Below are positions 2,659 through 28,099 of a DNA stretch of 64,000 bases, piece after piece. The notes beneath the pieces were generated by a model that searched no databases, was not told the origin of the DNA, and was given only the letters and a program-made list of their open reading frames with translations. The number at the start of each line of letters is the position of its first letter. Within the stretch, counting starts at the first letter, position 1. The position numbers and the translations under genes were made by a program. This DNA comes from Auanema rhodensis (lineage: Eukaryota > Animalia > Nematoda), in contig OZ059894.1 in assembly GCA_964057225.1 (NCBI GenBank), forward strand, positions 15,438,001 through 15,502,000, written 5' to 3'.

Positions 2659-5600
2659 CTCGAACAAGCGGGGTTTTACTTGTAGCTGGTGTCGGTTCGT
2701 ATTGCGCTTATCGAATATGTACCAACTTCTTAGGCCGAAGGTAAGTAGATTGCCGACTTTTTTCATATTTCATTTCAACACAGATAAAACTAAGCATTGT
2801 AGTTATAGTTTGTTGTTTTTCAAGTCGTTTCATTTTCTTCTCTTCAATTAATTTGATTTTTAAAGATTTGTGTGGATGCTTCTGGAATCATCACGAATAG
2901 ATACCATACCAACAGCTGATCGTCGACTTCTATACGACTGCAATGTAAGTTACATTAACTACTTTATGTCTTTTGGAAATTTAATTTATCTTGTTTTTCA
3001 ATGTTTTATTAGTAACAATTGCTTCCTTTACTCTAGAAAGTATTTTTGCTTTACTTCATCATCCTTCATATTTTGATTTAAAACTTCAGTTTTTATAAAA
3101 TTGGGGCTGGTGAGAGATAGAGATAAGTGGGAGAATAAGTTGAAGCTTAACTTTTTTTCATAAAAAAAGTGTTCATGTAGTTATAAACCAATATTTTTAT
3201 TTTATTTTTTGAAAGATGATGACAGATAGATGGATTTATGTTCAAGTATAACTCTTTACTAATCAATAAAACATACAGACAAGATATATGATATAGTTAA
3301 GAGAATCAAATACTATTCTTATCATTAAGTTTATCTTTTGTTAATCTCTACCTTACTGTTTCTCTAAAATCCATCCATCTGTCTTTATTCTGTCGGATGG
3401 TGATAGGCAAGAACTTATGGTTATTACATCATATAACTATAACTAAAAGGGGGTCAATTATATAATATTATTTTATGAAAAATAAACATATAATATAAGA
3501 AATTTGAATGAATATAAACGATAAAGATATATAAAATAACTATCTCCCTATCGTTTCTATTACTTTTCTTAATTTCTATAAACTTAAATATGTATTTCAT
3601 GTTTTAAACTTTATCTTTGTAAATATTTTGATTAAAAAGTTAAGTTTATCTTGATTAATTTTAAGTTATTTGTGAACTATAATCATGACAAATCTTTTTT
3701 AATTATAATGAAAGCATTCAAATAATTCACAGCTAAGTTGTATTCGTGAAAAACTTTTTCCCTGATTGAAACTTACAGCAATGAAATTGTTTAATCTCAA
3801 TATTAGTACTCACTATTACGTAAAAATAATAATAATATATATTCTATTCAAAATAGTTTTATAGATTTGTAGTTAAAAATAGATTTTATACAGTTTTATG
3901 AACTTAACATTCTTCCATCTTTCTGTCAGCTAGGTGATAATGTATAAATGCCCTTGTAACTGTCAAAACGAATTAGAATGACTTATTCCAACTTAATCAG
4001 AACTTTGATTATATGTATCTCAGAACATCTCTTTGCTTCAATTGAAAAAGGATAAAAGTTCAAATGCTTTCAAGACAAAAAAAATTTGATCAATTTAAGT
4101 TTGGTATACCTTAAGTTGAAAAATAAGTTTTCCAAAAAACTTTGAAAATATATGAATTTATTAGAAACTGAAAAAATTCTGAAGCATTCACATATAAAAA
4201 TATTTTATAGATTCCTTTTGATGGCAGCTTAAGAATAGAAGAAATTGATGATGATGACGAGGAGAAACATGAAGATGAAGGGGATGCCGCTAGTGTCGAA
4301 GAATGGCGATCTCGGGTATCTGAGAGTAAATCTTTGAGCCAGGTAGATTCTTCAAATCATGCTATTGGTTAAGTAATAATGCATTTAAGATATCACGCTC
4401 TTCAAGACTTCGTACATCAACCAGAGCACGAGGGTTATTCTCCCTGCGTCATGCTCATCAACCTAGGGAAGGTGTTGTGAGTCGTCGAAGTAACAGTGGC
4501 TCACGTGAGAATTTTTATGAAAATTTTGAAAAAAAAAGCTGAAAGACTTACCAAGTACAACCGCTTTTTACGTCAATATTAAATTAAATAAAAATTATTC
4601 ACTCCCCCCCCCCCCCCATATCACGTGTACTTTCACGCATGCTTTGATATTCAAATATAACTTTTAAAGATAAAAATATATTTCTAATGAATTAATGTCT
4701 TCAGAATGCTCTGATCGATCTGAATCTCCATCTCTATCTGAACACTCAGTATCCCTACAAATAGTATGGGAAGGTGGACAAGACAGTTGGGATGATGAAT
4801 TTGCCAACGGTATATCTTTCTTAATTTACAAATGATTTTAATGTATTTTAAATTATTTCAGCTGCAAGCACATCAACAGCTCCACATCCAACTAGGTACC
4901 GGTTAGCACAATCATCCTCTAGCGTGAACCAACCAGCTCCAGATGCATCTGTTGGAGATTTATGTTCGATATTCGATGACGTAAAACAAGAAGGCACTTC
5001 TTTCTAACGATAATTTCAATTTTCAGGTTATGTCTGTAACATCTGGTCTAGATGTACCGGATGAAATGCTATTTGGAGAATCAGAAGATGCCATAGATGA
5101 ATCTGAAGAAACTCAATTAAGCCATATCAAATGCTTAACTGATAGCAAATACATGTATTCAAGTCTTGTTGCGGGGTATGAACATTAAGTTTGACAATGA
5201 TTTTCATTCAATTTCATTTTCAGTAGCGAATTTGGGTCAGAAACTGGTTCGGTATGTAGTACACCATCCCGTTTACGATCGTTAAGGAGGAGAAAGCCAG
5301 AAAATACCGGGTACATTTTCATTTTGTTTTAGTTTTCTGAAGAATTTGTATTTCAGCCTTTGGAGTTTTGCTGCAGAAGAGCCATGTACCTCAACATCAA
5401 ACAACAACTTGAACTTAATGACGGATAGTGCTTTAACAAGAAGTTCTCACTCAAAGAAAAGGTATAATTTCTTTGCAAATTCATATCATCTTCAATTTTT
5501 CATTTTTCATTTCTTATTTTTACCATTTAGTTCACAAGGACCATCTATGTTCGATTCTGCAATTGGAACCGATTTACTATCAAGTGATGACGGCTCCATC

Positions 5601-6860
5601 GGACAACCTAGGTAACAACATGCTACATCTTTTCTTTTCTTTTCTTCCAAAATTCAGCATGAAGCCTATCATTACTAAATTTGATTTTTGCTTTTCTTGT
5701 TGTTTTGTCTTTTTTTTTTGTAAGAAAAGATATTTTAGATATCGATTAAATCCATTACAAGAAGCTGATAACATTTCAATTGCACAAACTGATGTTAGTA
5801 TGGAATGGTGTGATGATGAAGGATTACGGTAAAAATTATTAAATAAAACACCAAAATTAATAAAAATTGTTTGAAAATTGGTGATAATCATTTTAAAAAT
5901 TAAAATTTAATGCTGAACTGATGATTTCTCTTTATTCTATAAATTTATTTCAGATATGGTATTGGAGGTGATCTTGATATTCGTGTTCCTGCAGATGGAT
6001 TAGATTGGGAAATGGATCCAACAACTCCAATTCATAGACCCAAGGTATGAATTCAAATTATTTCTTGAAGAAAGGAAGATAAATCAAAATATTTAAAAAA
6101 ATTCAACCATTTCCTTCCTGAAAATTAGTTCCCCCTGGTTAGATAATTTTAGAAAATGTTGCGCAGTAGTTTGATAATAGTTATTCAAATCAGATTATAA
6201 TATAATTTAACTTTATATTATAATTATTTCTGGATTTTACGTAGTTTCTCTACTATCTGAGTTTAAGTGAAAGAAAAACGTGAAAAAGGAGGTATAGATA
6301 TGAGAGAGACAGAGAGAGGGAGAGAGGGGGGGAGTGGGGGAGGGAGAGAGCTAAAAATAGAAATATTGAGATAGTGAGTTAAAGAAAAAATAAAATTGAA
6401 CGATCTATTATCCATTCGAAATTAAAATCCATAGCACGAGACGTGTTAATTCTTAGATTTGGAGAATGAAAAATTAATTTGATTAGTGACGTCATTGAGA
6501 ACTATTAAATTATGCAGAAGTTTTCATTGAAAAGAGATCTAAACAACTGAATTGTTAATATATAACAAGATATTGTTGTTATTACTATATATGAATAATT
6601 AATTATTATAACTATATAGTAAATTAATCAAAATATGAACAGAAGATGTTAAAGTTCAATATCAATGATAATCCATAACAAAAATAGTTTTATTATCAAG
6701 TTAATATTTATTTGAAATAATTATGATAATGATGATAATGTTTGGTGAATGAATTTTCTATACATATATAGTATATTTAGTTAATTTAATAGATTCATAG
6801 AATTTCTATATAGTATAGTATTATAGGATTCTATTCCATATTTCTCTCTCTCTCTCTCTC

Positions 6861-6913
<53 letters not shown>

Positions 6914-9900
6914 TACTTGTAAATTGTACTTTCATAATGAAATTTTAGGACAATAAGTAGATAGATAAGAGAGTATTGTATATCTCAACTAAGAATTCAT
7001 GAATAAACCATAGCCTTTAAGCGAAATGGTTTTTTGTTTCTATTGAAAAATTTAAACTTCTTACAATTATATTCAAAATGAAGAAGCTATTGTAGAATAA
7101 GTGAAAAATTTTATGTTTCAGGATCGAAGTATGTGTGTGTCCAGCATCTATAGGCCATCCTGCTTCAGAGATCTAATGGTTATAGCTTGTCAACAGTATC
7201 AGCCATATACACCACAGTTCAAGGTTTGAAATTAAGTTTTAAGAAAAGTTGTGTATGAAAGTGGTCCCTGTTAGAGCATGAAAATCATGTTTGAAAATTG
7301 AAATATGATGTTGAAGACGTCGTTTCGAATGTTTTCTATTTCCTTATTTTAACTTGTTTTGTGTGAAGAAATAATTTTGATTGTCGGCCACTTACATACA
7401 TATGTATTAGGATAACCAGATATTAAGTACAATAGATCTTTCTTTCGTTTATATTTTAAAAAATCAAAACGATATCACAATAACAGACAAACTAACTAAT
7501 AAGTTAAAGCTGGAAGAAGTATATACTAGGCTGCAAATACGATAAATATAATTGATAATATACATATAATGCTGATCATGCTAGATAATAACCCAAACTA
7601 AATGTAAGTATATAGATAGGAAGCCGCAAACATGCTAACCATAACATATAATTGAGCTAAAATTAGAATTAGAATGCTATTCACTTTTGCTTTTTTTTGC
7701 GGTTTCCTCCTTTGAGCTTCCCTGATTTGTAACTTGTTTTTAGTAAAACATATATATATATATATGTATACATGTTACGTAGAATTGCTATGAATAGCTA
7801 AAAACTTGAAAGATGTTGGTTAAGTTTGAAAGATAAATACGAATAACGTTTAATTAGAGCCCCTCCAAAGCACGTCACTATGTTTTACGATCATAGCATA
7901 TTCTTGAAAGTGTTGCACTTTCTCCAGCTGTATGTGTGTGTGTGTGTGTAGAATACCCCAATCAGGCGTTAACTAAAGATTGAATGAAATAAAAATTTAT
8001 GATTTTTGTGAAACAAAGCTCATCAAATGGCTCTGTCTTAACTTTGTTTTCTCTTTGCAGACTTTGTTAGATATGTACCATCGACAACGATTCCGAAAAC
8101 TAGGCCAGATTGATGGTGATATAACAGCTGAGAAGCAAATTCATCTGGCTCTCCATTCGTTGCTCTATCATCAAGTCCGTTTGCTGCCTGGAGTCACATG
8201 GCCTGAACTTGAGCAGGTGAGAAAGTTTTTAACTGTTTAATGAGCATACAGCTGACGGTATTTGGTAATTTGATTAGCTATTATACATATAATTATCAGT
8301 ATTCCCTGATATTCTCTGATATTTTGTCAGAAAATCTTTCAAAACAATTGATTTTGGTTTTAAAAATAGTTGGGTTCACATACGAATTCGATTGTACGGA
8401 TTTTGTATGGCGTAAATGAAGCACCATCCATGAATTAACGACCAGTGCTTCTGCCTTCACTTCAAATGCTTCTGGCTTTCTCCCTGACGACGAAGATGAC
8501 GAATAGAACGATAACGATGATCTGGCTGGCAAATGCAGTAGCATATGATACTCTGATTTCATATAGTGTTTGCTTATGGCCTAAGGCAAAACAAGATTCG
8601 ATTGAAAACAGAATTTGTCTTAAGGTCAGAAGTATCGCAGAATAGCTTGTAATGCATGTCGTGTGTGTGTCATCATATTGCGACATTCGAATGAACAGAA
8701 GGAAAAAAAAAGAATAATTTCATCATTTAATGTTTATAGTTTGGAAAAAAATATAAAATATCATATAAAATAGAGCTCAGAGAAAAAAAACCTTATAAAA
8801 GACTAAGATGTATAATATTATCTTAAATAATAATTTATATCATAATTATATGTTTATAGTTTGGGTTAATAGCTTATATATGTATGTAGTTAACAGGCAT
8901 ATAGACTGAATATGATAGATAGAATAAGCAATCTACTAGAATTTGGTTTTGTTTATGATGGAGAGGAAAAAAATATTTTATTATATCTCAAAGAATAGAT
9001 GATGATAGGATAGTTCACACAGGTTCTAAAGATAAACGCTTCATTATTCTTGTTGGGGTATGGGCAAGATAGCAATTGGATGAAATAATCATCACGGGAA
9101 TAATCATTAGGCTAAACTGGATTAAGGTAGTCCAAATTTTTCTGTAAAGTAATGGGTTTTGAGACTGAAGAAGAAGATGAAAATTTATGATAAGGCTGAC
9201 TAAGAGAGAATTGTGAGTGAAAGAGAGGGAGAGAGAAAGAGGAGAGGGAGAGAGAGAGATAGAGAGAGATAACGAGAGAATTAGACTGATTTGATTAAAT
9301 CAGAAGATTTGTTTTGAGATCTTTCAAATCTATTCATTAAAATTTTCCATTTCAATCACAATCAGTTGAATTGATTTAACATTTTTTTCCTTTTTTTTGG
9401 GGGATTTTTTTGGAAAACATCGGTTTGTTAGCAAGTAAAAACAATTCAGGTAATCTCAACAGCTGAAAATATAGATGCTCTATGGCTATGTTTTGACAGT
9501 TTCCTTAATTTAATCAAAATTCTACATATCTCAATCTAGTAATAATGCTTTTTACTATCAAAGATCAAAGATAGTTAAGAAGATAGAACAGAAGAGATAA
9601 GAGTGCTTTTCTAGGAGTAGCTAGCTAAACCTAATATGGCGAGTGAGCTTCGTTTTTCTTCACTATGACTGATCTATAGGCTGTTTCCACACAAACCCAT
9701 GAAAGTATGAAAAGGTTTGTGCGCTGACTCAGAAGCATTCGTCGTATGCTCTTAATAAAAGTGAAAAAAACTGACACAGAAACTGCTCATCTTATGTGCT
9801 TTGGAGAAAATGATTATAGTAAATGCATATTCCGAGCAGTGCCAAAGTCGAATCTAATGCTCTAAATGAACTCTGATAATCGTTGTTGATTTCAAATAGA

Positions 9901-11180
9901 TTCCGACGTCAGATTTTTTCATTTAACATACGAAGAAAGCTTCGTTGAGGATTTTAATTAGGTTTACGTAGTACTTCTATTCAGAGAGTATTATGAGGTG
10001 TTGGATAATGGTGAATATGAGATGGCAAAAGCAACCAGTCTCAGTGTCTACAGTAAGTAAAATAGACTTCTAAGCTCACGTAAATTTCACGTCAACATAC
10101 GTGTAATACGTGAACGCAGTTAGATGGAAATGAATGGATTGGGGGATATTAAATCAGCGCTGGTTAGTCAGACATAAGAGAATATAGTCAAGAATATTTA
10201 GAATACAAAATGTATAATATCAAATACTAATATTAATATATGATGATATATTGATACTGAAGATGATAAGAAAAACAAATGAATTGAGATGTGCTCGAAG
10301 AAAGATTTTGAAAAAGACGCGAAGTTGTGGTGTTGATGGAAAACAAAAGGAAAAACTGTATGAGATTCTCTGAATGTTCATAAGTAGTTTGTAATACTTC
10401 AGACTACGGTAATCACAGGAATATCTTCTCTTGCTAGTTATCAGTTGCGATTATCCCTTTCGACGCCTGCTAAGAAACCTGAGAACGTCTGATGAGAATT
10501 GCATCGGTCGTAGTTGCACATGCAGCGGAACAAAAATTCAGGACCACCGAATCGTGGTGAGAGAGGTCGTAGGTCGAATTTCTGAAAAAAGGCGATTAGT
10601 ATGAAGTTAGGATAAGCTTTTTTATGGATGAAATCTTTTTCAATGGTTGACTTCATGTTGAGAAGATCTCAATTTCGTCAATCGGCTATCTGTCTCATGA
10701 GCATCTGAACTACTGGCTACGTTATAGCATCGAGTCTTTCTTATTCTTGCTCTCGCAATATCTCTTTCTCTCACTCATTCTCTCTCTTTCTATATATATT
10801 TCTCTGTTTCCTCCTAGAAAGAGTGGTTGTAGCAATAGTAGTAGTAGTAGTAGTAGTTAGTAGTAAGTAGTAGTAATGATAGTAATAGTAGTATAGTACA
10901 GTGACCTGGAGTGCTAGAAGCTGAGCAAAAAGCAAAAGTCATAAATGAAACTAATTAAAAAAGGAAGTGAGATCACTTTTCGCATAAACTAAGTGCAGTT
11001 GAGAATCTATTGAACTCAAAAAAAATTTATTTTCCTTCAATTAAGTTGAAACTAGAATAATGTTGTCAACTTTCAAAGAATGTCAAAAGACTTGATCGGA
11101 AAACGAATTTGTAGATAGCCTTTTGTCATGAGATTGCGTCAGCATAATTATCTCGTTCTATGCATATATGTATATATAGT

Positions 11181-11217
<37 letters not shown>

Positions 11218-14200
11218 CATAAAAATCCTTTCTCACATCTATTATAACCAAGTTTTTTCTATTTTTTGCCTTTTGAAGACAAAATTTAAGAAAAAAGAAG
11301 CGGAACTGTTAGTGACTGTTATTGAAATATAAGACAATATTTTCAGCTTTCCTTCCTCTTCCTCTTAGCTATTTTATACAAAATGAATATACTATAATCT
11401 GCTCAAGAATGTAAACACAGTATCGATGATCATGAGCAGATGAGACGATATTTACAATATTTCTGAGTGATACAAATGAAAAAAGAAGTGTATTTCCTTA
11501 CCTCGTAGATACAGACTGTTAGAACTTTGTAGAAGCTGTCACCTTGTTTGAATGTGTTATCATATACGTAAGTACTATCCTCTTCGGGACCTGTAAATAA
11601 TATAATTTATATTATATATAGATTGATTAAAGAGAATAAGATTATATTCTTCTTTAATTCATTCATAAACTGACCAACTCCGAAGACTCGAGTTATAATT
11701 TGATTGCTCTGAGGAATGAATACACAATATTTCCATTCGTCATTTTTAACTTCTCTGATTTCACCGGTCTAGAAAAAAAGTTATTTAAATAAGGTATTGC
11801 TCGTTTGGTTCTCATGTGTTTGGAGAAAAAAATGTTTGAATAGTTGATGCTAAATGGATGACGTGGATGGCTATATAAGGAATAAGTGTTATGACATTCG
11901 ACCAATTTTCATTACTGTCATCTAGCCCAAAAATGCGAGATATATTATCATATCCCGTTCTTCTAGCCTGTCAACTAGCCTTGATTTTCTTATTTGACTC
12001 CATAGATGATGTCATCAAATGATTTCATCGTCATCTTATCATCATTATATCAAAATTAGAGAATTTGGTGTATGATTGGTTATCCTACGTAAAGATCAGA
12101 TGATGTGTGGTCGAGGAAGAACGAGGACACAACATCTGCATACATTCCGTAGATGCCAGTAGGAACTTGTTTCTTCACACATCACTCAACCTTGCGGATA
12201 TACAGAACCTCATGGCGAGCATTACTATTCACGGATTCTGTGGAAGATGATGATGCAATAATGTCCATCTTTCCTTATTCTTGAACCACAAAAGCCATCT
12301 CATTGCTTTCTATATTTCAAATTGAAAATGGTAATTTCTAAATTACCCGAAAGGGCATTCTGAACTCAGAATATTGACGGTCAACGAAGATGCGTTAAAC
12401 GGACACAGCAATATATAGAGTAAGTGAAAATGGGAGAAAGCAAGAGATACAAAGAAGGAAGAGAAGAAGGAGAAACTCCTACGAAAAGCATTCTTTTCAT
12501 TATATCAGCTTTCATCTAATTGAAAAGAGGACCATGACGGGTTAACTTGGTTTCAGCTCTTCAGCCTATACGTTACTGAAGCGTAGGAGTTGTCAAAGTT
12601 GGAAGATGACAAAAATGTATGAATGTTGCTAATTCCAATTAGCTTTGTATTTTTCAAGTTCGAACTGTTCTGTTTGAATAATTTTTGAAAGCTTCACCAA
12701 TTCTATATAAGAGTTTTGGATGAGCTTAGAGAAGATATATAATCATGATAAGGAAATGAAGACTATTTGAGATGAGATGAATGAAAAACACAGGAAATAC
12801 ATTAGAAATATTATGTAAACTATACGTACTGATTCATCGGATTCGAAACATGTTAAAGCAGCAGATTGAGCCAGAATGGAAAGAAGGCAGAGAAGCACAA
12901 ACATCATTATATTACCTGAAAGAAAATTAAGAAATACGGTTAAATTATGGTTGAGACGTTCGAAACACAAAACATAATCAGAAAAAAAAACATGGATATA
13001 GAACGACGAATAATGGAAAAGGATGAAAAACAAGAAAACGTTGTGGATTAGGATTGCTTAAGACTTAGTGAATGTCATCAAAAGACAAATAATACAAGTA
13101 GATATTGTGAAAGATATGATGGAGAGAAGACTAACGAAGAGAACAGGGCAATCAAGGTAGAATGAAGGTGAGAGAGAGAAAAGGAAATATATGGAATGAT
13201 AATAGAAAGTGCGATCAGGTGAAACTAAATTGAATTTTTGGCTGGGCTTCAAAGAAATTATATCCGGAATAAAAGGAAAAAAAAACAAATTTGTTTAAGG
13301 TTGTTGAGTATAGTTGATGCATTTTGAATTTTGTAAAAGTTTGGTGATATTCCAAAACAATTATGTAGAGGAAACGTCATGAATGAATGAAGAGGGATTG
13401 TGCTTTAATAAAAGAAATAGGAGGAGCTTGATCTTGAAAGAGGAAAATGGGAGGAGATTGAGGAGGAGACAACTCACTCTCTCTCAGAAAGAGGTAGAAA
13501 GAGGATGAAAGGAAAAAAGAGAAAAGCAGTCAGATAAAGCCTTATCTAGCTGTAGTAAATCGCTGCTTTGTTTCTTCATTTCTCTAATTCTCTGACTTTG
13601 ACGTATATTACTTTTGGAGTGCTCTCTTTCACCATCCTCTCTCATCCTTGCTCTCAAGTCTAACCGACCAGCGGCTACCCGTGAAAGACCGCCCATCAGC
13701 TCCACCCCCACCACTGCAGATCGGTTGAAAGAGCCCTGACTAATCGTAGTAATAGCCATCAAAAGTCGATCTTAAGCTCTAGATTGTGAAGCTTATATAT
13801 GGGATCGAAAAGCTAAGAGCTCACATCAGTTATGGAAACAATAAGAAAAGGAATGAAAAGCAGATGAACAAAGCCTATAACTGGTAAAATGATAATGACA
13901 CTGACGTCCATGTTCTCCGCCGCCGTCGAAGAACAAGCCAACGAATTGAAAATTAAAAATGTGGGCGGTACTTATCAAATGTTGCTCATTGCCCACTTGC
14001 TTGTTGGTAGAAAATGGAAAGAGTATAAGAGCAAAACGTGGAAAATACAATTAAGTTCAGTAGAAACAAGGAAAAGTGAAAAGACCTCTCAAACCATTTG
14101 TCGAGATATTCTGATTTACTAATGGTCTCCGTCACTTCGAATATTAAAAGCTTCAATAGTATAGGGGTGATGTCATTATAAAAAAAGCTCCTAGTGATCT

Positions 14201-17200
14201 ATTTGCTTCATGGTGCAATTATATTTTATTCACGTTCGAAGTTTTACGTGTATTTTCACGTGGAATATAAAAAGCATTTTAAGCGTGTATTCTATTGTGA
14301 ACGGTTGAACTACTCCATTTCTCACACCTACTTACCCATGCAACATATACATTCTTTATCTTTTTTTTTAAAGTTCGATTCAAACAAAAAAAAAAGGTAG
14401 AATTGTCGTCTGCAAAAGGCTAAAATGAACTTATGCTATTCTACTTCTGCTACATTGTCATGTCAACTGGGTTTGAACAATTTGAAGCTTCAAGTTTGCT
14501 CACTAGGTATGGTCGCATGCGGTCTCCAATTACTCACATGCATGCATGTGTATGTATATATAGATTGTCGGAAAAAAAATTAGAACTATGACAGGAAGAA
14601 TGAGGGCTACCACACATATGTTGTTATGAATTTTTCTATGCTGTTGACAAAATAGCTTGCCGGCTGACTCAGGGAATGTCTTTCAGCTTGTCTCATGCCA
14701 TTTGGTCTTCCAAAATACCAGCGGATATCTTCAGAAAATGCTGTGAAAAACAACAAAAAAGAAGACGTTGGTGCTACAATATATAACGAAATTGGAGATG
14801 ATGAAGCTCCAACAACTTCGAAGAAAAAACGAAAATGAATAAAGACCGTCAGTCAAACAGAATTCGTAGGCATCAGACTGAATCCAATATGAAGAATGGC
14901 TGTAGTGAGGGACTAGCAGATGCCAATTTCCTTTATACCATATATGATATTTGATATGAGAGAGGCTTCCGTTTTACAGGTTGTTCTGATCCAGAGAGCA
15001 TAACGAAATGGAAATCCTCCACAGAATTAGAATATGTGTGAGAGATTGGGCATCAAATCATTCCTATATCCAGATAGAAGTTCTTTGAAGCTGATGATGT
15101 AAAAGCTGTCAAATCGTGTTTTGTTTTGATCTACTGAACGTACTGAAAAAGAACTTATGATGTCCCGCCTCTTTTCATCATCAAGCGCTAAGCTTCAAGT
15201 ATCTTCAAATGGAAAAGCTAAACGAGCTTCAAACAATGATTGATTTGAAAACGACATTGAAATAAAGTAAAAAACTACTTCGAGACTCTGCTCATAAAAG
15301 GAAGGCAAAGACAATCGAGATGCCAAGCATTGTTGTTTCTTGAAGAGACAACGTCTTGAAAAAAGGATTCACAACATCGGCGAATCTGAAGAAGAGTAAA
15401 CTTCAACTATTACACTTGAAACGATGTGATGATGCATCATTCAAAGCGCTTGGATCTAACTGATAATCTGTAGATGAGTGCGATGAGTTGAATCAATGGT
15501 GTGACGCGTAATTAAAAGATGACGAGAATCCGGCACAAAATAATAATTAATTCTCAAAAGCAACGTCACGTTTCAAGTTGAAAAGGCGGAAAAAAATAAA
15601 ATAAACTGATATGCGTATGTATATTAGAGAGTGAAGTAAAAGAGAAATAATTGATATTCAAGTTCAAAAGCAAAAACAAAAAAATCACTGCAATAAGAAA
15701 GAAAATGAACTGGGAAGTTGAGGTCTCCATTCTCCTTCTCCTTCTCCTCCTCCTCATCTGAAGTTCTTGTGCTCTCAATGTTATGGACACATAAGCTACA
15801 TACTTTGAATAATGACGGACTTCTACGTGTTTGCTGTTCTAAATCTCACACGATCGGTCAGACCACGAGAATGGCCTTCTGGATCTCAACGCACATCAGA
15901 CCAACTATTTACGCTGTTATTGGAAATGATTATGATGCAGATGATGAAGACGTTCATCACGACAGAGAACAGGGCGAAGACGGAGAAGAAGATGTGGATG
16001 ATGTGATGCAACAGGCTGGCCGACAAGGTTGACCTTACGTAGTCATTGCGAAATTCTTTTCGAAGATATTGCGCATAGGGCGCGAGATCTTTTGAATTTC
16101 TGGCCTGGGTTGTCCTCATCTGCCTCTTCAGCCTTACAATGATCGTCATAGCCGTTCTCGTTTTCTCTCCCACTCTCTCACTTGCTGCCATCCATGAACC
16201 CATTGAGCTTTCGGCAGTTACGTCGTGTCCTCATCCACACTCTTAGCATGTCTCATGCCTCTCCAGGTAGTTCACTCATTCTCACACTCTCGTGAATGAT
16301 TATACTGTACAACAAGACACAACGTAGGTGTTCTTAGCACCTGGGGTCCTGTTGAGGTCAAAATGACGTGACAGTGAGACAAAAGACATAAATAGAAAAG
16401 TGATGTAGAGAAGAAGCCATGAAGTGGACACCATGAGTCGAACAGTCGCAAAGAAAAGTGATGAAATAAGAAGAATTGAAGACCATAAACCTGAAATTAT
16501 GAAGTAGAAATAAAAGTACAAAAGGCTTTAAATCAGAAGAAGAAAGAAACGGATATGAAAATGAAAAAGATATTCATATATTTTTGCATTAACAATATAT
16601 GATATAAGATTAGCTCCAATGGAAAGATTAAAAATGGAATCATCAGTTTACTCTGACCAGTTTTCTTGTTTCTGAACAGCTTATAACACAGAATAGTGTT
16701 ATGGTATATCTCAAAGTTTGAAAGCACAACTTCCATCGAACAGTGAAAATAGTCAGACTGAGAGCAAGTTGCCAATGAAAGAAATGAAGACAAGAAAAGG
16801 AGGGGTGGAGAATGTATGATGTTGAGTTCTTAGCAATTATTTTGTTTTTCTTGTCCACTTTTTCATAATTAAAAGCTTCAAAGTGTCTATATACTAGATT
16901 ATGGTGATTGGGAACAAGTTGAAAAATAGGATTACAAGACTTCTATTTAAAAAAAGTCAATAAAAAACTATTTGAACGCTCTTAATATGCATCTGCATCT
17001 AAAATTTATATTTCTAATTATTAAAAATTCAAAAAAAGTGTTTATTTAAAGATAAAATTTATATTTTTATGATTAGTTATTTAATATTTATCTAAACATG
17101 TAGAATATATTGATAACTACATCACTTTTATATATTTTTAATAGATATATATAGATATATCTAATCTATTTCTATATTATGAACTCGAAGGTTCAAGAAA

Positions 17201-20200
17201 TTTTAATAAAAAAAAGAAAAAAAAAGGAATTTTACAACAATATTAAAATATTATCTGTTATATCGTCATTATTAGCATCATCATATACATTTCTATTCTT
17301 TTTTTTGGATTTTAATGTCCTTTTAATCCGAATACTATCATTCTTACCAGCAGTTTATCCATTTCTCCATTTCATTTCAATCAAATTCATTCAGTCTCTA
17401 TCTCTCTCTTTAGCTTTTCCTTAATACTTTTCTCAACTTCTTTTCCATTTTTATCTCGATCTTCTTTCTCTTTCATTCATTCATTTACATCATCAAGTGT
17501 TTCATCAAAGCTTCAAAATCCTTATCTATATCATATCATATGCTACCAGAAATATGGTTTTATTTAGAAACAAAAAAAAATTAATTTGAAAGAAAATGAG
17601 ACTAAACTCTTGTCAGTTCAGTAAATAGCTTCAATGTTCAAATTACTAACGACACAAATGTAATAACAACTATTGAAAAAAAGAAAAGAAGTCAATGAGT
17701 TTGTGTTCCATGAACTGACTTCAACTGTGAGTTTAAATGTCGACGTGGCTTTAATGGAATGTCTTCAAGGTCTAAATATAGATTTATGAGTAGACGTAAC
17801 AGACAGCAGACAAAGTCGAACACAACGGAAACCAGTAGTGAGTTCCGAACTATAATCTATTTCCAATGTACATATCTATGCCACCGAATTATAAGAAGAA
17901 CACCATCAGCTCTACACGCCTTGCAATAACAGGAATCACCTGTTTCAAGAAAGAGAGAGAGAGAGGGAGAGAGAGAACTGTGAAGGTTGCAAACTTCATA
18001 TTGGCTAGCACAGCGTTTTGCTCAATTAACAGCACGCAAAAGCGAAGGTTTTGCTAGGAGATGAAGTGTATTTCTGCAGCTTTTTCGACTTCTGAAGCTT
18101 GTGATAATCAGCTCAAATTGAAATTTCTGTGGGGATGGGATTTGATTTAATCTAAAGCGTAAATCTGCGACTAGGGAGATAACAACTTGTAAGTGTTACG
18201 TATCAATCGTTTCTCCAGGATGTACGAGAGTTCAAAATCTTCAAAAAGGGGGAGAGATATAGAATTGAAGTATGAAACGTCATGATCGTTGGTTGTCTAG
18301 TAAGTCAGTCACGCAGAAATAGCCTATGGCATATTAGCATTTACACCGTTTCAATGTGAACTCCTTCTAAAGTGTAGAAGAAGAAGAAAATGTGAGACAG
18401 AGAGTGATATAGAGAGAAATATAGAAAGACGTGAAGAATGAGATTAATAAGGAGAATGAAATGAGAAGTGTAAGTTAGTTCAAAAGGTCCTGAGGAGGAC
18501 GTTAGACTGAGCAGTGCTCTTTCCAAAAGCACTAGTTGCACGTTTTTCCTTCTCATATCCGCTTTGTCACAACATACCCCCACCTTGAAATTCAAATTCA
18601 AGCTCATAATCTTTGGCAAAAAGTGCAGATTTGTTTAAATGTTATTACAAACTATTTCATCTGCTCTTAGCCTTATTTGAATAAAAAAAGTGTGAAACGA
18701 ATATGTAGAAGATATTGCGAGGTTAAGCAATTCAATGAATTTATTCAACTAAAATGTTGTAATTCACACTTTAAAATCAAGTTTCGCGAAATTGTCAATG
18801 ATGAAATCATAAATTAACTTAAGGTCTATTCTATTTAGAAAATTTCATTAAAAATCCGACGAACTGAAAATAGCCTATGCATAGATATATGTGAGCATGT
18901 CATTTTGTGACTTCGTCGTTACTAAAAATGGAACTTAAAAGCTTATAATTAATCGAAATCGAAGAGTGCATGAGACATATATAGAATAATTAGACAGCAT
19001 TTTTTCTATTTCTGACCTGGAAGCATATTATACACACAGATATTGTATATAACATCCTACACACATGTGTCAGATGAATTCCAAACAAGGAAGAACTTTA
19101 TTGGTCTGTCGTAATCAGAAGCAATGAATGGTTTTTGTAAATACATTCAATGTTTTGACAGCAGAAAAATGAATTATTAGTTTCTGACTTAAAACAGAAA
19201 TAGTGGACGATGGAGATGTCGACCAAAAAATTGGTAGAATGACAGATATCTTCACTTCTGATATGTATACTCTCCTTAAAAGCTATCAAAAATGGGCGGA
19301 GTTACCGTAATCTATTGGATATTATAAAATACTAAAAGATAAATATATATTCGGACACATGTAGTTATTATTACAAATTTTCATATTAAATTGTTTAAAT
19401 TTCATTGAAATGAACTGTGATGTAACAGGAAATTTATGAAAATATGGTTAAAGTACAACATAGTGGAGGTAATGCTGATACTCATCCTGTTACGGCAATA
19501 ACCCAATTTTTGAAAGATCAGAAATGGTTCTAAAGCGATCAGTAAATTATAAAACCTAATTACGACCGATAAGGTATGCGTGAGTGTGTGTATACGTGTG
19601 TGTCTGTGTGTGTGTGTCTGAGTGATTGAGCGTTAAATGAAAGCAAAAATAATAGGAAATATGACTACATCAAGGACAGAAGTAGGAGACCTTTCATGAT
19701 ATTGACGTTATAATGTTAGAGATTGCCTTTTGAATTGTTAGGTTATCACATTTGGAAAAGGTTTAACTCAATTCAATATGCTTGCTATTACCTCATCCAG
19801 ACACCAACTTCGTGAACCTTGATATGCAAAGGCTAAACCCGATTACGGATGAACAAAATAACTCCAATGACTTTTTACGAATCATCGACTGCTTCAGAAA
19901 ATAAATTTATAATTTTAATTTGCATAGTTATATGGATTTGTATAAATATAGATATTAACTTTGGTTTTTAACTACTTACAGCTAGTAGACTCTGAGATAT
20001 AGAGCTGAAGCTAAAGCATGTCTGTGAGCATAACGAACAGAAATAGCACGAATACGCAGGTTTTATTGTTTAGTTCTTCTTACTAGCCAGACGTATCTCA
20101 TAAACTTGATGATTATTGTTGTTCCGGTCCTAGATGGTCTTACGACCTAGTGTGTTACTCTTCATCAAGCATGTTGATACCAAGTCGGAAGGTTCAGCCA

Positions 20201-23200
20201 CTTAGTGGAGCTCCCACTGCGATGTACGTAACAAGTGGAGAAAGAACTCTTACCTTTTCAATGAATATAGCCTCTTAATGATTCTATTTTCTAATTCTAT
20301 CTCAATCGAATGCATCATCAACTTCATCTCCACGTTATCGAGACATTGCGTCATCGTTTCTTCAATCACGTGGCGAAGATGATCAGAACTAGCATCTATC
20401 TTTAAACCTTCTTACCAACTTCTCTCTTCTATTTCCACTCTGGATAGCCTTTCAAATTCATCATCTGCATCTCTATCTCTCTTTCTCTTAGTAGCATTCA
20501 TATTCCATCTGCATGTTTCTTCGTCAACATTCCAGATGACTATTCTGTCGATGACGCTACTCAAAGAGACACAAATTGCGTTTATCCACGTGGTTATTGT
20601 GATCCGTTTAAGGGCAAAGAAGTATAAATGAGTGTTGAGATGAAAGTACGAGAATGCTAGAGAAAGAAGTCAAGCAAGTATATAAGATAGAGAAAATCGA
20701 AGAAGAGCTAAGAGAGAGAAAAGAGATAGAGAGAGAGAGAGGGTACGAGAAAGAGTAATATAACGGAAAAAGAAAAAAAAGTGAAAATATTAGAATAAAG
20801 CAAAGATATAAATAACATGACCGTTTAATGTGTCTGCTCGATCTAAAATAATCTCCTCTCTTAGAATGATGACGTGAAAGTTCACGTAAAACTTGGAAGA
20901 AACCTCTTTTTACAAACGAGAAATAAAGACATTATAGATTAAAGACAAAAAAAAAGAAAGAAAATTAAAAATTTACTGAAAACATAAAACGTAATGTTCA
21001 TGCTTCAAAGATAAATTTTGAATTGTTTAAATGGACATAGGGGGCAAAGTACGAATGTGTCAAATATGCTAGAAGCATATTATGTGTTCATAACTTATAA
21101 CTTTTAAGATTATATGTTGTGAATTGCATCATTTTATAGTTTATAATATTAAAATTCATATAGATAACTTCATAAGGTGTTTTTTTTTGATTTTTATAAA
21201 GTAACCTGACTTCTGTTTGGGGTGTTGATCAGCATTGTTCTTAGATATTTAACTATTTGTATTTTTACAAATTATAAAATTTATTTATAAGAACTATACA
21301 TATAGTTATCTAATATTAATTTTAAAATATATCTTAAAGAACAAAACATTTTATAATTTTAAAAAATGTTAGAGAAGAGCTCTTTGCATATCTTCTTCAA
21401 AATCTTTGTCTACTACTCTCGGTCATCGTTATCATATTCATTATTTTTCTATTTTTAAAAGCTTTTTGTTTGAGTTTCACTACGCAACGAAAAGAGAATA
21501 AATTAATTTTTCTAATTTAGGAAGGAATTATATTGCTTATCCCTTTTATTTTCCTTTGTTTCAATGACTAACGGGGGGGGGACTTCCTTCCCTCTCTCTT
21601 TTTTTCGTTCACTTTCATTATTTTCTATCTCTCTCAATCTTTTACTCTCTTTATTATTATTATTAATATTGTCTATCTCTCTTTCTCTTTCTCTTTATCT
21701 TCAATTTTGAATGACTATTTTCTTTTTTTTCTCAAAAAATCTTCTTGAAAAAATGTAAATCTCCTTTTCTTTTAATAATCTCAATGAATAATAATTAAGT
21801 AAGTGTATTTCATCTTCAGTAATATTGAAGTTATAACTTCAAATTTTGGTATAAATTTCCAAAAAAAGCAATATATAGGCTTATATAAATGCTAATATCC
21901 ATACAAATTATATCATTTCAGGTGAGAGAGAAATTTAGTCGGATTGACCAGATAAAAAGTAGAAAAAGACAAAACAACATGGATTAATTTAATCAGTTTA
22001 TATCAACTTTAGCTCAAACTACCCAGAAAACAAGAAAAATAAAAGAAATTGAATAATAATAAAATAACATGAAAAAAAGAAAAATGACGACAGTTATGCT
22101 AAACCAAATGGCATAGTTAAGTGAATCAGTTATGTTAGCTTTTCAGGGAGATACAAAGGATAGAACCTTTTGTTAGGAAGATTTGAAAATAGGAGGAATT
22201 GCGTAACAGGAAACATTGAGATGGATATCGTTTTCATGATATTTTCTCATTTATTAAACTGTTTCACAAAACGGTTAATAGATAGAGTTTTTTCAAATCT
22301 ATTTAATTCAAAATTCTGGTAATAATTGAATATTATGAGAAAAGTATAAAAAAAAGTTTTTCCATTGGTAGAGAAACACGATTATGTGAGGGCAAGTAAA
22401 CTAAAAAAATACATTTCGGAGTACTACTGAACTCTCAGAATCGAGACCATGTAATTACTCTGCCAAAATATCTGAGTTGATGTGAACAACAGCAGTGTCA
22501 AGACGTCGTTGATTTGATATCCAGACGTGACAGCGATACACGAATCGTCGTGTAGTAGCCCAGAGAGCACAAATCCAGCTCACCCAGCTGTATGCTTGCT
22601 TAGACTCAAACTGTCGTGGCTTTCGTATTTACTTTTGAGGGCAGGACCGGAAGATGAGACTCTGGTGACCTGGGTGACCTTCGGATTAAGCCTATGATTA
22701 CTAGTTTGGGCTGATGAGGATGATGAGACAAAAGAATCTGCCTAAGATAGAGAGTAGAGAAGAAAAAAGAGCTCAGGTGAGCAAATGGTCTACCCACTGA
22801 GCAATTTGGGGTCAGAGCATCGTGCAGCTTGAGTGTGGTAAAATAAAAGAAAAAATTGGTAGGTTAGATAGATTGAGCCTAGTAGACATATTAATTAAGT
22901 TCAAATTAAATAATATGTCTTCGTTTACAATTGAGACTGTGTATGGATGGGTCACATTAGTTTTAAACTCAAAAGGCTTTAACCGATCCTCCAAAACTGA
23001 TAGATAATTCTAGGTTTACTATATAATGAAAGAAACAAAAAAAAAGAAAAAAAGAACTATAGTAGAAATGATGTGAAAGAAGATGTCTTAAATCTCTTCT
23101 CTATAATGAATTACTATCACATGAGAATGAGATATGTTCAAGAGGAATAAGCTTTGTTGCAAAGTATTTCATAAATAGATTTGTGAAATATAATTTGAAA

Positions 23201-26200
23201 AGCATACTACTGGTCATCTATGTTGCGTCATCATGCTGCTACTCAACTGCAACGTAATTGTATGTGTATGAGAAGGCCAAAAGCCATGAATGACTAACAT
23301 TTGCATACATACCGGACATTGAGGACCTCCTAATATGATGTAAGCTGATGATGATCAGCATTGAAAATAATGTAAAAACGATGATGAAGCATTTCTCAAC
23401 GGCTCTTTATCTTTTTCGCTTAAACGTTTCCGGAATTTCTTACTACTTCATTCACTTTAATATCCGTCTGACGACTTGATCTCAATGAAACGAGTACAAA
23501 ATCCTCAGTGTATCCTAAACCAAATGACATCATTCAGCTCTTTCTTTGAGATATATTTCAATCAGAAATGAAATGAATGATTATAAAGATTGTTGCATAT
23601 AAAGCAACTATCTTATTATATCAATAGCCTTAATGGTATTGTGTGAATCTGCTGTTGAATCTGTTCTGAATCTCTCTCATCTTTTTTCATTTTGATCTTT
23701 TAACTGTAAATTCTCTTAACAGATAGTTTTACATCTTTTATACAATCAAAGCAAATCCCATGTCATTTTGTATCGATGATAATCCGTATCAGCTGACGAC
23801 AAAGAAGTATTTCCTCTTTATCTTTTTTTCTTGACATAGATAATAACCAAAAGTATTTCATCAAATCGTTGATATTTTAAATCATTTGAACATATAATTC
23901 GAATTGAATTATGGTGATGATGAGTTGAAATGAATTATATGAGTTGCATATGAATTCTATTTAACTAATTATACTATATATAGCTTTGAAAACTAAATAA
24001 ATTGTACTGAGAATGTATAATATACATATTCTTTTTAATATTTTCCAGATGTTTTTTTTTTTCATTTGAAACATTTTAAAGAATAGAAGTTACGTAACAA
24101 TACTTTTTTTTAATATTATTTTTTGTTCTTAAGATAAGGGAACATACATGTTTCTCAGCTCTTTAGCTTTTGCAAGTTTTTAAACTTTAAAATTGACCAA
24201 CGGAAATAGAACATCGAGGGGAACGGAGGTAATTGACATGAAAAAGATCAGTTGATGAAACGGTGTGGTCAAATTATTTGACATGAGAAGCTGAGAAAAA
24301 CGAACGTGTTAGGGGACTGCCCAGCACAAAAAAGAAAAGAAAACAGATTTTTGTCTCATGTTGTCAAGTAATATGTGCATTCGGAACAACTGTTGTTTCT
24401 TCAATTTTGAGTAAGAAAAAAAAATTGAAAATCTAGTAAGGTTAGGCAAAGGGAAATATGATATTAAGATAAATATATTTGAAAAAAAAAACAAAAAATA
24501 ATAATATCTAAATATAAAATATTCTGAAAATAAACTAAATTCTGACAAATCTTCTTCTTTTGCAAGATTTTTAAACTACTTGTTTCATAAAGATTATTTT
24601 TAAAAGTTTAGTTCATTGATCAAAACGTAGTAAATTCAGAAATATTCAAAAAAAAAAAACTTTTTCAGCCAATGAACAGAGAATATGAAGTTATTTTATG
24701 TTTTTTATTTTCAGAGATTGAAAGATTGTTTGGATGAATTCGATTTTTTGCATAAATGGAAAGGACGGTCCATTAAAGATCTGCAACGTCATCTGCGTGC
24801 TATTTGGGATGTGGTAAGTAGTAAGATAAAGCTTTACAAGACATTCTATTAAAAACTTGTGTGATGGAAAAGCTAAAAAAAAGTCAAAAATATAGAAGAG
24901 AAAACAGGGAAAAAGAATTCTTGATCAAATATATTTCTAATATATGTATTTCTAATTTTCATATATTGTACTGAAAAGTATTAGGAATTATAGAAACTAA
25001 CTATGTTTTCATTTGATATAAGTTTCTTTCAAAAAAAAAGAGAAAAAGAAAAAAAAACCTTTCTTTCTAACTCCATATATAATAAATGAAATAAGAATAA
25101 TATACATAAAGTATGTGTGTTATGCAAAAATTGTTCATTAACCTAAGCAGAAGAAGACAAAAAACTGCAAAGAATAAGCAGTTTATATATGCAATTTTGT
25201 GAGAAAAAAAGGAAAAGAAGAAGAAGAAGAAGAAGAGTAATCAAAATAAGTAAAGTACTTGTAAATGAATAGATCTTAATTCAGATGTTTTTTTTTTTTT
25301 TTAAATTGAATTCTCCATTTACGTCAAGTATAAGTGACATTTGCATATCATTTTAATTTGATTTACAGTAATCATCGGTTGTATATCAGAAATTTTTTTT
25401 TTTTTTAAACAAAAAACTTTCTCTTAACTATATACATATAGTTTTAATTTTTTATTTTATTTAGGTGGATTTGCATCTTTTATCAGAAAATGATGATCAT
25501 ATCAAAGGATTTGAACTACTAATGGTACTTGAAGCTAAAAAGGTTTATGATCAAAAGATGAAAGGACGTAAAGGATTGTCATGGTTTGATTGTGATAGTC
25601 CTGCAACTATTATGCATTCACTGGAAGAGAATCAACCACTAACCGAGGTAAATCATTCATATAATTTAGAAAAAAGCCTATATTTGAACAAGAAAAAGAA
25701 TAAATATAAGTTGATAATGCTGTATGCAAATGCTACAACTAGAAATGCCATTTATAAACCATTGCGCAAATTCATAATCAGTTTACTATATCTGAATTAT
25801 GGTTTCGTTTTAGTGTAATTTTGATAATTTGTGCTTAAATCTAAAAATATAAAAAAGTATCAAATCAAAAAGCAATACGCGATAATGATTTGAATGAAAG
25901 TTGCGTCATCAATAGCACACAAAATTAAAAATAAATTATTTCATTTTAGCTTATTAGCTTTGAAAAGAAGCAATGTTGTCTTGATTCAATGTCTAATTAA
26001 GTTTATCATAACTTGTAATTGATAAAGCAAAACATGGCTTATCTGCGATGGTGGTTTGCAAATGTGGATAATCATGTTATTTCTTCAAAATTTCAAAGCT
26101 TATTTAGTTAATAAATTCAAAAATAGCGTTTATTGAGAGCATATCAGTAAAGCTCACATGCCCTTCTTCTTTTGTATTGTTGTGTTCTTCAACATTAATC

Positions 26201-27462
26201 TATTTATAAATGCCACCTTCTGATTTTTTATTTTTACCATAATCTCTTACTAGCTTTCCTCTATTTAGCAAATTCACCTATACAAGCTATTTTACATATT
26301 GTTTAGAAGCTACATCTTAAACTAATGAGATTCAGCTTTGCATATAAATACATATAACAGATTTAGATTGTTGTCTAATTTCGGTTTCGCTATCTTTCAG
26401 AGTTTAAGACAATTTACTATAAGTGCTCTTGAAGTTTCCACTTTTGATCAAAAATATTAATCAATTTGTTTGTTGATGTACTTTTTCTTTATATTATTTA
26501 ACTAGAACTATTCGGGATACATATATTTAGTTAAAATTGTCTCTATCTAATCAACTATGAAGTATTATTAGCTCAGACCATGCTTTTAGTATTTCAATCC
26601 AATCTGCAAAAGCGGGTTTTTCAAAATTAACTTCCTCGGCGGAACTTAACACTTTCAAATATTTGACAGTTTAGAAAACAGTGGAATCTTTTAAGCTTCA
26701 AGCCTCCTTATCCTATGCAACAAATTTCAAACATAACACTAGTAGATTTTTGAAAAATGAAGAAGAAGAATGAAAAATTCTTTTATGAAAGTCTTTCTGA
26801 AACATCTCGTAACAAACAAATTCAAATTCATTTTTTCTCAGCCACAGCATAGGGGATTTGAATAAGTTTTTAAACAATTATTCAATATCCTCTTTGAGAA
26901 TCAAAAAAAAAAAAAGAAAATTAACAATAAATATTTCTTTTTTAACTTTTTATCTTGTGTTATAGTTATATAATAATCAAACTATAAGTTGGTACTGAGA
27001 AATACGTAAAAAAGCTTGTTTTTCATAATTCCTTTTAATATCATCTATTAATATTAAAAAGATAAAGTTCTAATTATATTCATAGATCTCTTTTTATTTT
27101 AATTAAAACAAAATTGTGATTGTGATAGATATGAATAAAACAAATCCGATCTTGGTCAGGCTAGTTTTTTTTTGTTTGATTAGTCGAACATAATGCTTTT
27201 CAAGCTGCTCATACATTAAATTAGATGAAACGAAATAAGAAACAGAATATGTGAGGGAAGCTGATGGTTTATTAAATGAGAAACGGAAATAAATATTTTA
27301 GTTTTTTTAAAAATATAAATTATTCATTTTTATAATTTATATATGTACATAAGTATGTATACGTAACTAGCTCTCTCTCCTTTTCTGTATCTCTCTCTCT
27401 CTCTTTCTCCTTTACTTCTATCCCTCTTTCTCAATTACTATATGTAATAAATTACATAGATT

Positions 27463-27507
<45 letters not shown>

Positions 27508-28099
27508 CTGTATTTTCATCACAAAACAAAATGTCTTTTGTTAAAGAAGAAAAATAAAATCCATTTATCAAATAGATAAAAAGATAAAAGTTAAAGTCTT
27601 TATATCTATTTTCTAGATATATCACAAAGATGAGCACCAAAAAAAAACTTCAAACAATTACCGAGAATGTGATACATGAATGAAGTGGTGATTAGTATTC
27701 TGCTTCATTATATATAGCATTTTAAAATCTTTTTTAACTATTCATAAGAAAAAATTTTTTTGTTGATTAAGCTAAAAAAGAAAAGAAGATAAAAAGATTA
27801 AGCTTATTCAACTGAATCTATAGTATTCTTTGCTTGGTCAAAAAACATTTTATTTACAATACATATAGTTAGTTTGTAATATACGTAATATAGAAATATA
27901 AAACTTTAAATATTCTTTATGAAACATCTTTCTTTTGCAGATTGCCTGGAATCTGATCTGTCGCATTTCTGATTTGACGATAGAGCTCATCGATCTATCC
28001 ACAGTTCAAACTTCCTACATTGGAAATGGAGCTACCTCTTTGCCTTGGATTCGACAACGGTCTTCAACATTGCCACTATTTTTTGTTCCTGAAGACTAA
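2659..28099 (+). CDS. Membrane-anchored OTULIN/FAM105 (OTU-fold) family protein, predicted catalytically inactive (OTULINL-like); at least 643 aa, 17 exons, 5' end not found
   Basis: Phase-consistent GT-AG exon chain: 2659-2740, 2866-2944, 4211-4342, 4390-4504, 4705-4809, 4862-4980, 5027-5175, 5224-5310, 5357-5461, 5531-5611, 5739-5828, 5954-6044, 7122-7223, 8061-8216, 24715-24813, 25465-25647, 27941-28099 (TAA). The N-terminus has a hydrophobic segment (GVLLVAGVGSYCAYRIC). The C-terminal part (RDLMVIACQQY..QRFRKLGQIDGD..VRLLPGVTWPEL..FDFLHKWK..FELLMVLEAKKVYDQKMKG..DLTIELIDLS) matches human OTULIN blocks (MDIMDYCKKEW..QKFTSIRRVRGD..VGLPPWLQDPEL..YNWIKQWK..VKFLMLNRAIELYNDKEKG..HTIQVYRLS) in the same order. 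The gene model is more certain than the family call. Confidence 0.8.
6843..6911. repeat. (CT)n microsatellite
   Basis: CT run with one interruption, intronic. Confidence 0.95.
10441..12907 (-). CDS. Small secreted cysteine-containing Ly6/uPAR (three-finger)-like protein, 133 aa, nested antisense in an intron of the OTULIN-like gene
   Basis: Exons 12907-12830, 11768-11675, 11590-11502 and 10581-10441 join in phase to give MMFVLLCLLSILAQSAALTCFESDESTGEIREVKNDEWKYCVFIPQSNQIITRVFGVGPEEDSTYVYDNTFKQGDSFYKVLTVCIYEKFDLRPLSPRFGGPEFLFRCMCNYDRCNSHQTFSGFLAGVERDNRN. It has a signal peptide, the LxCF start and the terminal CxCxxDxCN motif. A TTTCAG acceptor lies 8 nt before the ATG. Confidence 0.85.
10836..10892. 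repeat. Imperfect (GTA)n microsatellite
   Basis: Degenerate TAG/GTA run. Confidence 0.85.
11184..11216. repeat. (TA)n microsatellite
   Basis: TA run. Confidence 0.95.
14425..14838 (+). other. Candidate small spliced ORF inside the 16.5-kb intron (47 aa from ATG 14695, or 77 aa if spliced from 14425-14506)
   Basis: TTTCAG acceptor at 14681-14686, ATG at 14695, ORF MPFGLPKYQRISSENAVKNNKKEDVGATIYNEIGDDEAPTTSKKKRK, and TGA overlapping AATAAA (14838-14843). An upstream AG|GTATGG donor at 14507 is in phase with ATG 14425. No homology recognised. Confidence 0.25.
22666..22680. promoter_or_regulatory. Nuclear-receptor direct repeat DR3 (TGACCT-ggg-TGACCT)
   Basis: Two perfect AGGTCA half-sites on the minus strand are spaced by 3 nt. 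More GGGTCA half-sites occur near 22809 and 22949. Function is inferred. Confidence 0.4.
27466..27506. repeat. (TA)n microsatellite
   Basis: TA run. Confidence 0.95.

Follow-up and report, generated by a model that had tools for sequence, protein, structure and literature searches.

A probable ric-7 orthologue of the nematode Auanema rhodensis, with a predicted OTULIN-type C-terminal domain lacking the catalytic cysteine and histidine

Can five short coding stretches, scattered over 21 kb of nematode DNA and interrupted by a 16.5-kb intron, encode a single folded domain, and if so, to which gene does this domain belong? The question is raised by a 64,000-nucleotide stretch of the Auanema rhodensis genome (contig OZ059894.1, positions 15,438,001 to 15,502,000; hereafter the window), in which an initial annotation had joined five exons in phase 0 into a domain of about 230 residues and assigned to it the fold of the deubiquitinase (DUB) OTULIN and its relative OTULINL (FAM105A). 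We consider it highly probable that the gene is the orthologue of ric-7 in this rhabditid nematode, and that its C-terminal domain is a non-catalytic binding module with an OTU fold of the OTULIN/OTULINL form, devoid of the catalytic Cys and His.

All five stretches are free of stops in translation, each has a length divisible by three and is in phase 0, and each is preceded by AG and followed by GT; the acceptors are of the nematode type (tttcag or (t)nCAG), and the last exon closes with TAA. An exhaustive search of representative sequences with exon 17 alone (numbering as in Table 1) found P0002, a 687-residue protein of Auanema sp. JU1783, to residues 575-634 of which this exon is 67% identical. 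When P0002 is compared with the window by tblastn, its residues 45-687 match colinearly: residues 455-687 correspond exactly to the five exons in order, at 65-82% identity, and twelve more exons are found at 2659-6044. The five exons are exons 14-18, that is, the last 5 of the 18 exons of one gene, which spans about 33 kb and has a predicted product of about 689 residues. The 17 exons that fall in the window all have AG/GT splice sites, read from the sequence, as well as consistent phases and stop-free frames. Over 231 aligned positions exons 14-18 are 74% identical to the C-terminal domain of P0002, and exon 15 is single-copy in the 181-Mb genome. Judged by translation, splice sites and colinearity with P0002, the five-exon join of the initial annotation is exact to the base.

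The join across the large intron draws further support from related species. In the genome of Auanema sp. JU1783 the last five ric-7 exons are separated by introns at the same codons as here, all in phase 0, and the intron following ...LEQ is 11.9 kb long, compared with 16.5 kb in the window. P0012 (707 residues) and P0015 (701 residues) are unbroken ORFs (open reading frames), carried by 2.6-3.0-kb contigs that come from four sequencing runs; since the ORFs are unbroken and the contigs mRNA-sized, these are spliced mRNAs with the same colinear join. Summed over exons 14-18, the proportion of differences from Auanema sp. JU1783 is 0.16 at nonsynonymous (pN) and 0.76 at synonymous (pS) sites, which indicates coding constraint, the protein being conserved while silent sites are saturated. 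As read from the sequence, exons 14-18 are real coding exons, predicted to be joined across the 16.5-kb intron.

A profile word search placed this protein in a family with full-length relatives in other nematodes: P0013 and P0014 (Haemonchus), P0015 (a trichostrongylid-like transcript), P0016 and P0017 (Pristionchus) and P0012 (a Caenorhabditis-like transcript). The 90% cluster of P0013 includes CDJ91348.1, 'Protein RIC-7, isoform b [Haemonchus contortus]'. The end of the C. elegans protein can be read from the 5' homology arm of a published ric-7::7xgfp11 repair template, which translates to PVPLFYIPDDE followed by a GSGGGG linker. This end is identical to that of P0011 (a protein in which the first half of the OTU-like fold would be missing) and fits the C-terminal motif of the family, PLF[FY][VI]P[DE][DE], as does LPLFFVPED, with which the gene in the window ends. 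Homology to RIC-7 is thus drawn from the last 11 residues of the C. elegans protein together with the cluster name, and the three-part architecture of RIC-7 is found as well: the first 100 residues are the best-conserved part of the family protein, the middle region is rich in Ser and acidic residues and diverges fast, and the last 233 residues are predicted to fold. C. elegans RIC-7 (F58E10.1; isoform b, 709 residues) shares this architecture and length, with an ordered N-terminus of about 100 residues, a disordered middle of about 370 and a structured C-terminal domain of about 240 that is OTULIN-like in structure, as it is here. Unlike the C. elegans gene, the one described here is spread over some 33 kb, with a 16.5-kb intron, and its C-terminal domain is only about 34% identical to that of the Caenorhabditis-like P0012.

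Note that, among the relatives P0003, P0004, P0010, P0013 and P0031, RIC-7 orthologues are often annotated as 3' fragments of 128-217 residues, probably because gene callers halt at the large intron, and also bear unrelated names: 'Mediator of RNA polymerase II subunit 13', 'BTB domain-containing protein' and 'Pecanex-like protein'. P0003 retains an intron and P0001 carries a duplicated segment.

Does the C-terminal domain have the proposed fold? An AlphaFold2 model of residues 455-687 of P0002, made with family alignment A3, reached a predicted local distance difference test score (pLDDT) of 85.3 and a predicted template modelling score (pTM) of 0.85. Foldseek searches of the PDB with this model matched OTULINL (6drm) with an E-value of 6e-7 and a template modelling (TM) score of 0.71, OTULIN (4ksl, 5oe7, 3znv and others) with TM 0.64-0.71 and otubains with TM 0.50-0.58; OTULINL and OTULIN were tied within one Z unit. 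The OTULIN/FAM105 fold put forward initially is therefore borne out by the predicted structure, and an OTULIN-type extended OTU fold is supported by the model. At the level of sequence the likeness is not visible. None of exons 14-18 matched Pfam, exons 15 and 17 matched no PDB sequence, a word search with exon 17 was blank, and the curated cut-off of PF16218 (Peptidase_C101) was not reached. Human OTULINL (6drm) is 10-12% identical to the domain, with no Pfam match, and is without the 350-residue disordered spacer of the RIC-7 family protein; human OTULIN (FAM105B; 3znv, 4ksl) is 13-14% identical, and no PIM or PDZ-binding motif is evident here.

The catalytic triad of OTULIN is Cys129/His339/Asn341, and its equivalent in OTULINL is Asp139/His350/His352. 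The offset at the C-terminal end of the aligned ranges is constant (model residues 229-232 correspond to OTULIN 345-348), which puts OTULIN His339 at model residue 223, where both P0002 and the window have a serine. Templates of nearly equal length, OTUB2 (9-230) and OTUB1 (48-271), assign the catalytic Cys to model 53-58 and, once more, the His to about 223, as do the shorter OTUD2, OTUD3, OTUD5 and nairovirus OTUs, the catalytic residue numbers of these templates being literature values. Model residues 53-58 comprise the loop after strand 46-50 and the first residue of helix 58-71, and read DGEVTA in P0002 and DGDITA in the window. The OTULIN triad is thus missing, the positions in question being occupied by D/G/E/V/T/A and Ser. 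Independently of any alignment, exon 15, which encodes the strand, loop and helix of the Cys site, contains no cysteine, and exon 18, which encodes all four C-terminal strands, contains no histidine, in good agreement with the losses that had been read from the GDITA loop and the final strand. Across the family both columns vary, the Cys site being A, T, S or V and the His site S, R or A. The domain is very probably not a cysteine protease, and we infer that it would be without DUB activity.

Several points weigh against this reading of the gene and its domain. The sequence comparison with C. elegans RIC-7 itself covers its last 11 residues only, the fold was predicted on the Auanema sp. JU1783 orthologue (74% identical) standing in for the window's own joined product, and the residue equivalences were drawn from alignment ranges, not from a residue-by-residue superposition. 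PF16218, the profile by which the fold was to be checked, has no match in any exon, in P0002 or in its domain; six-frame translation of the whole genome gave none at the locus and one chance-level match elsewhere (E 1.39), and family profiles A1 and A3 produced chance matches only against PDB sequences, with no OTU chain among them. As to transcripts, 23% of the words of 24600-28600 occur in four runs from a single study, whose RNA nature is a guess. A separate short gene formed, or also formed, by exons 16-18 (24715-28099) from a promoter in the large intron, such that the 8216>24715 join is not the sole or main product, strikes us as quite improbable. It would account for the database proteins limited to this part (P0003 from Heterorhabditis, 217 residues; P0010 from C. 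angaria, 166 residues; P0004, 128 residues) and for the 70-residue N-terminus of its own that P0011 (229 residues) has ahead of the exon-16 equivalent, and the conserved non-coding blocks of the intron could include the promoter. However, most such short proteins are fragmentary gene calls of the kind that large introns tend to give, full-length mRNAs with the join are present in two other species, the P0011 N-terminus has no match in the window, and an OTU fold cut in half would probably not be stable alone.

The origin and chemistry of the domain could also be read differently. That its likeness to OTULIN and OTULINL does not reflect specific descent, the domain having arisen within nematodes from a different OTU ancestor, such as an otubain-like one, is an unlikely proposition that nonetheless deserves some weight. 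Against it, OTULINL and OTULIN take all of the first eleven VIA ranks, with at least 20 additional aligned residues, their TM scores (0.64-0.71) exceed the 0.50-0.58 of the alternative, and HHpred on C. elegans RIC-7b also put OtulinL and Otulin first; otubains (OTUB1/OTUB2) score lower over fewer aligned residues, and their catalytic Cys/His are missing here. We hold it to be very improbable that the domain is an active hydrolase, i.e. a ubiquitin or ubiquitin-like esterase or protease using unconventional residues, as has been suggested for OTULINL. A 2026 preprint describes weak, cryptic Ub-Ser esterase activity of OTULINL, which is also without the Cys, so that a missing Cys is no proof of missing chemistry; moreover, the domain is under purifying selection, and both the window and P0002 retain DG, a dipeptide of the OTU Cys loop. 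OTULINL, however, keeps two histidines at the triad, His350 and His352, whereas the RIC-7 family has none there, and the columns at both catalytic positions differ from one family member to another. Such Cys and His residues as most members do share (AC[EQ], YH[RK]RR and LYH) sit in other elements, and AC[EQ] and YH[RK]RR are lost in Pristionchus.

If the gene is ric-7, what would the protein do? In C. elegans, genetic and imaging evidence, obtained in that species only, shows that RIC-7 localises to mitochondria and is required for their anterograde axonal transport. Residues 1-99 go to mitochondria, axonal transport of mitochondria requires residues 1-470 and no more, the OTU-like domain is dispensable for it, and neither human Otulin nor OtulinL rescues the ric-7 mutant (Wu et al. 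2024). The window protein is likewise tripartite: about 100 conserved residues form its N-terminal domain, about 350 its fast-evolving disordered middle and about 230 its C-terminal domain. To judge from C. elegans RIC-7, the first two parts would target the protein to mitochondria and power the kinesin-1-dependent anterograde movement of these organelles in axons, and the gene would most likely be this worm's mitochondria-transport adaptor. The OTULIN-like tail would most likely serve as a conserved, non-catalytic protein-binding module whose role is not in the transport step.

The initial annotation had also called the protein membrane-anchored, which the sequence does not show: the hydrophobic stretch in exon 2 has a Kyte-Doolittle peak of only 1.2, too low to claim a transmembrane helix, and the model of the N-terminal domain is unreliable (pLDDT 51.5). 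Its remark that C. elegans has no recognised linear ubiquitin chain assembly complex (LUBAC) agrees with a six-frame genome search in which the HOIP LDD domain (PF18091) had no match, evidence that is only weakly negative. We give little credence to a further proposal, by which the C-terminal domain would be a nematode descendant of the OTULINL lineage, an ancient organelle-membrane pseudo-deubiquitinase, with a ubiquitin-related role at mitochondria or at contacts between the endoplasmic reticulum and mitochondria, where it would bind ubiquitin or ubiquitinated cargo or weakly hydrolyse ester-linked ubiquitin. If true, it would explain the conservation of the domain across rhabditid nematodes despite its dispensability for axonal transport, and would provide a genetically tractable counterpart for OTULINL.

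The features of the locus are collected in Table 1. Within the large intron, eleven non-coding blocks are colinear with the corresponding intron of Auanema sp. JU1783 and 75-97% identical to it, despite the saturation of silent sites in the exons (pS 0.76). Nothing in Rfam matches the blocks and their RNA folding is not unusual (z -1.1 to +0.95); they are therefore probably conserved cis-regulatory elements of ric-7 or of a small gene nested in the same intron on the minus strand. The product of this nested gene looks secreted and starts MMFVLLCLLSILAQSAA; in Auanema sp. JU1783 a gene is annotated in the same nested position (133 residues, DUF5354), and the last exon here has a weak DUF5354 match (E 0.0075). 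Long microsatellites inside ric-7 introns translate as SLSLSL.

Table 1. Features of the ric-7 locus, in window positions unless a genome position is given
Feature	Position	Strand	Content and basis
ric-7 exon 1 with ATG	G000:C1:15433392-15433525, ~4.6 kb upstream of window	+	Genome match
ric-7 exon 2	2659..2740	+	Conserved N-terminal domain with hydrophobic stretch; 96% identical to P0002 residues 45-72
ric-7 exon 3	2866..2944	+	End of conserved N-terminal domain, motif ADRRLLY; tblastn and splice sites
ric-7 exon 4	4211..4342	+	Start of acidic/Ser-rich disordered middle; tblastn and splice sites
ric-7 exon 5	4390..4504	+	Disordered region; tblastn and splice sites
ric-7 exon 6	4705..4809	+	Disordered region; tblastn and splice sites
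ric-7 exon 7	4862..4980	+	Disordered region; tblastn and splice sites
ric-7 exon 8	5027..5175	+	Disordered region; tblastn and splice sites
ric-7 exon 9	5224..5310	+	Disordered region; tblastn and splice sites
ric-7 exon 10	5357..5461	+	Disordered region; tblastn and splice sites
ric-7 exon 11	5531..5611	+	Disordered region; tblastn and splice sites
ric-7 exon 12	5739..5828	+	Disordered region; tblastn and splice sites
ric-7 exon 13	5954..6044	+	End of disordered region; tblastn and splice sites
ric-7 exon 14 (first of the five initial exons)	7122..7223	+	Start of predicted OTULIN-like domain, motif RDLMV
ric-7 exon 15 (second)	8061..8216	+	Strand, 'Cys loop' (DGDITA) and following helix; without cysteine
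ric-7 intron 15/16, 16.5 kb	8217..24714	+	Nested minus-strand gene and colinear conserved non-coding blocks
ric-7 exon 16 (third)	24715..24813	+	Helical part, motif CxxFDFLxKW
ric-7 exon 17 (fourth)	25465..25647	+	Long helix; motifs LxVLEAKxVY, WFxxDSP
ric-7 exon 18 (fifth)	27941..28099	+	Four C-terminal strands, motif PLFFVPED, stop; without histidine
Conserved non-coding blocks	14611-14736, 15093-15172, 15508-15568, 16004-16117, 16336-16372, 18582-18631		Probable cis-regulatory elements
Conserved non-coding blocks, continued	18796-18856, 20550-20618, 22601-22690, 22831-22859, 24313-24398		Probable cis-regulatory elements
Nested small gene	10444-12913	-	Exons ~12827-12913, 11658-11777, 11499-11603, 10444-10587
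Microsatellites	~800-920, 6814-6953		Long (CT)n / (GA)n

The OTULIN-like domain of C. elegans RIC-7 has already been published (Wu et al. 2024), and since the locus is very probably its orthologue, the finding itself is already known: the fold was read correctly from the window but is not new, and biologically one more RIC-7 orthologue adds little. As the text of Wu et al. 2024 nowhere uses the words 'catalytic' or 'ubiquitin', the family-wide loss of Cys and His and the purifying selection on the domain are a modest addition. Reading of the raw sequence alone assembled a domain of 230 residues over a 16.5-kb intron and recognised a fold that is invisible to sequence profiles. To what was known of RIC-7 we add that the whole family is without both the catalytic Cys and the catalytic His, that purifying selection on the domain is clear from two species with saturated silent sites, and that automatic annotation often breaks or misnames ric-7 at the large intron. 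These additions sharpen the question of what role is played by a pseudo-OTU domain that is conserved, yet dispensable for transport.

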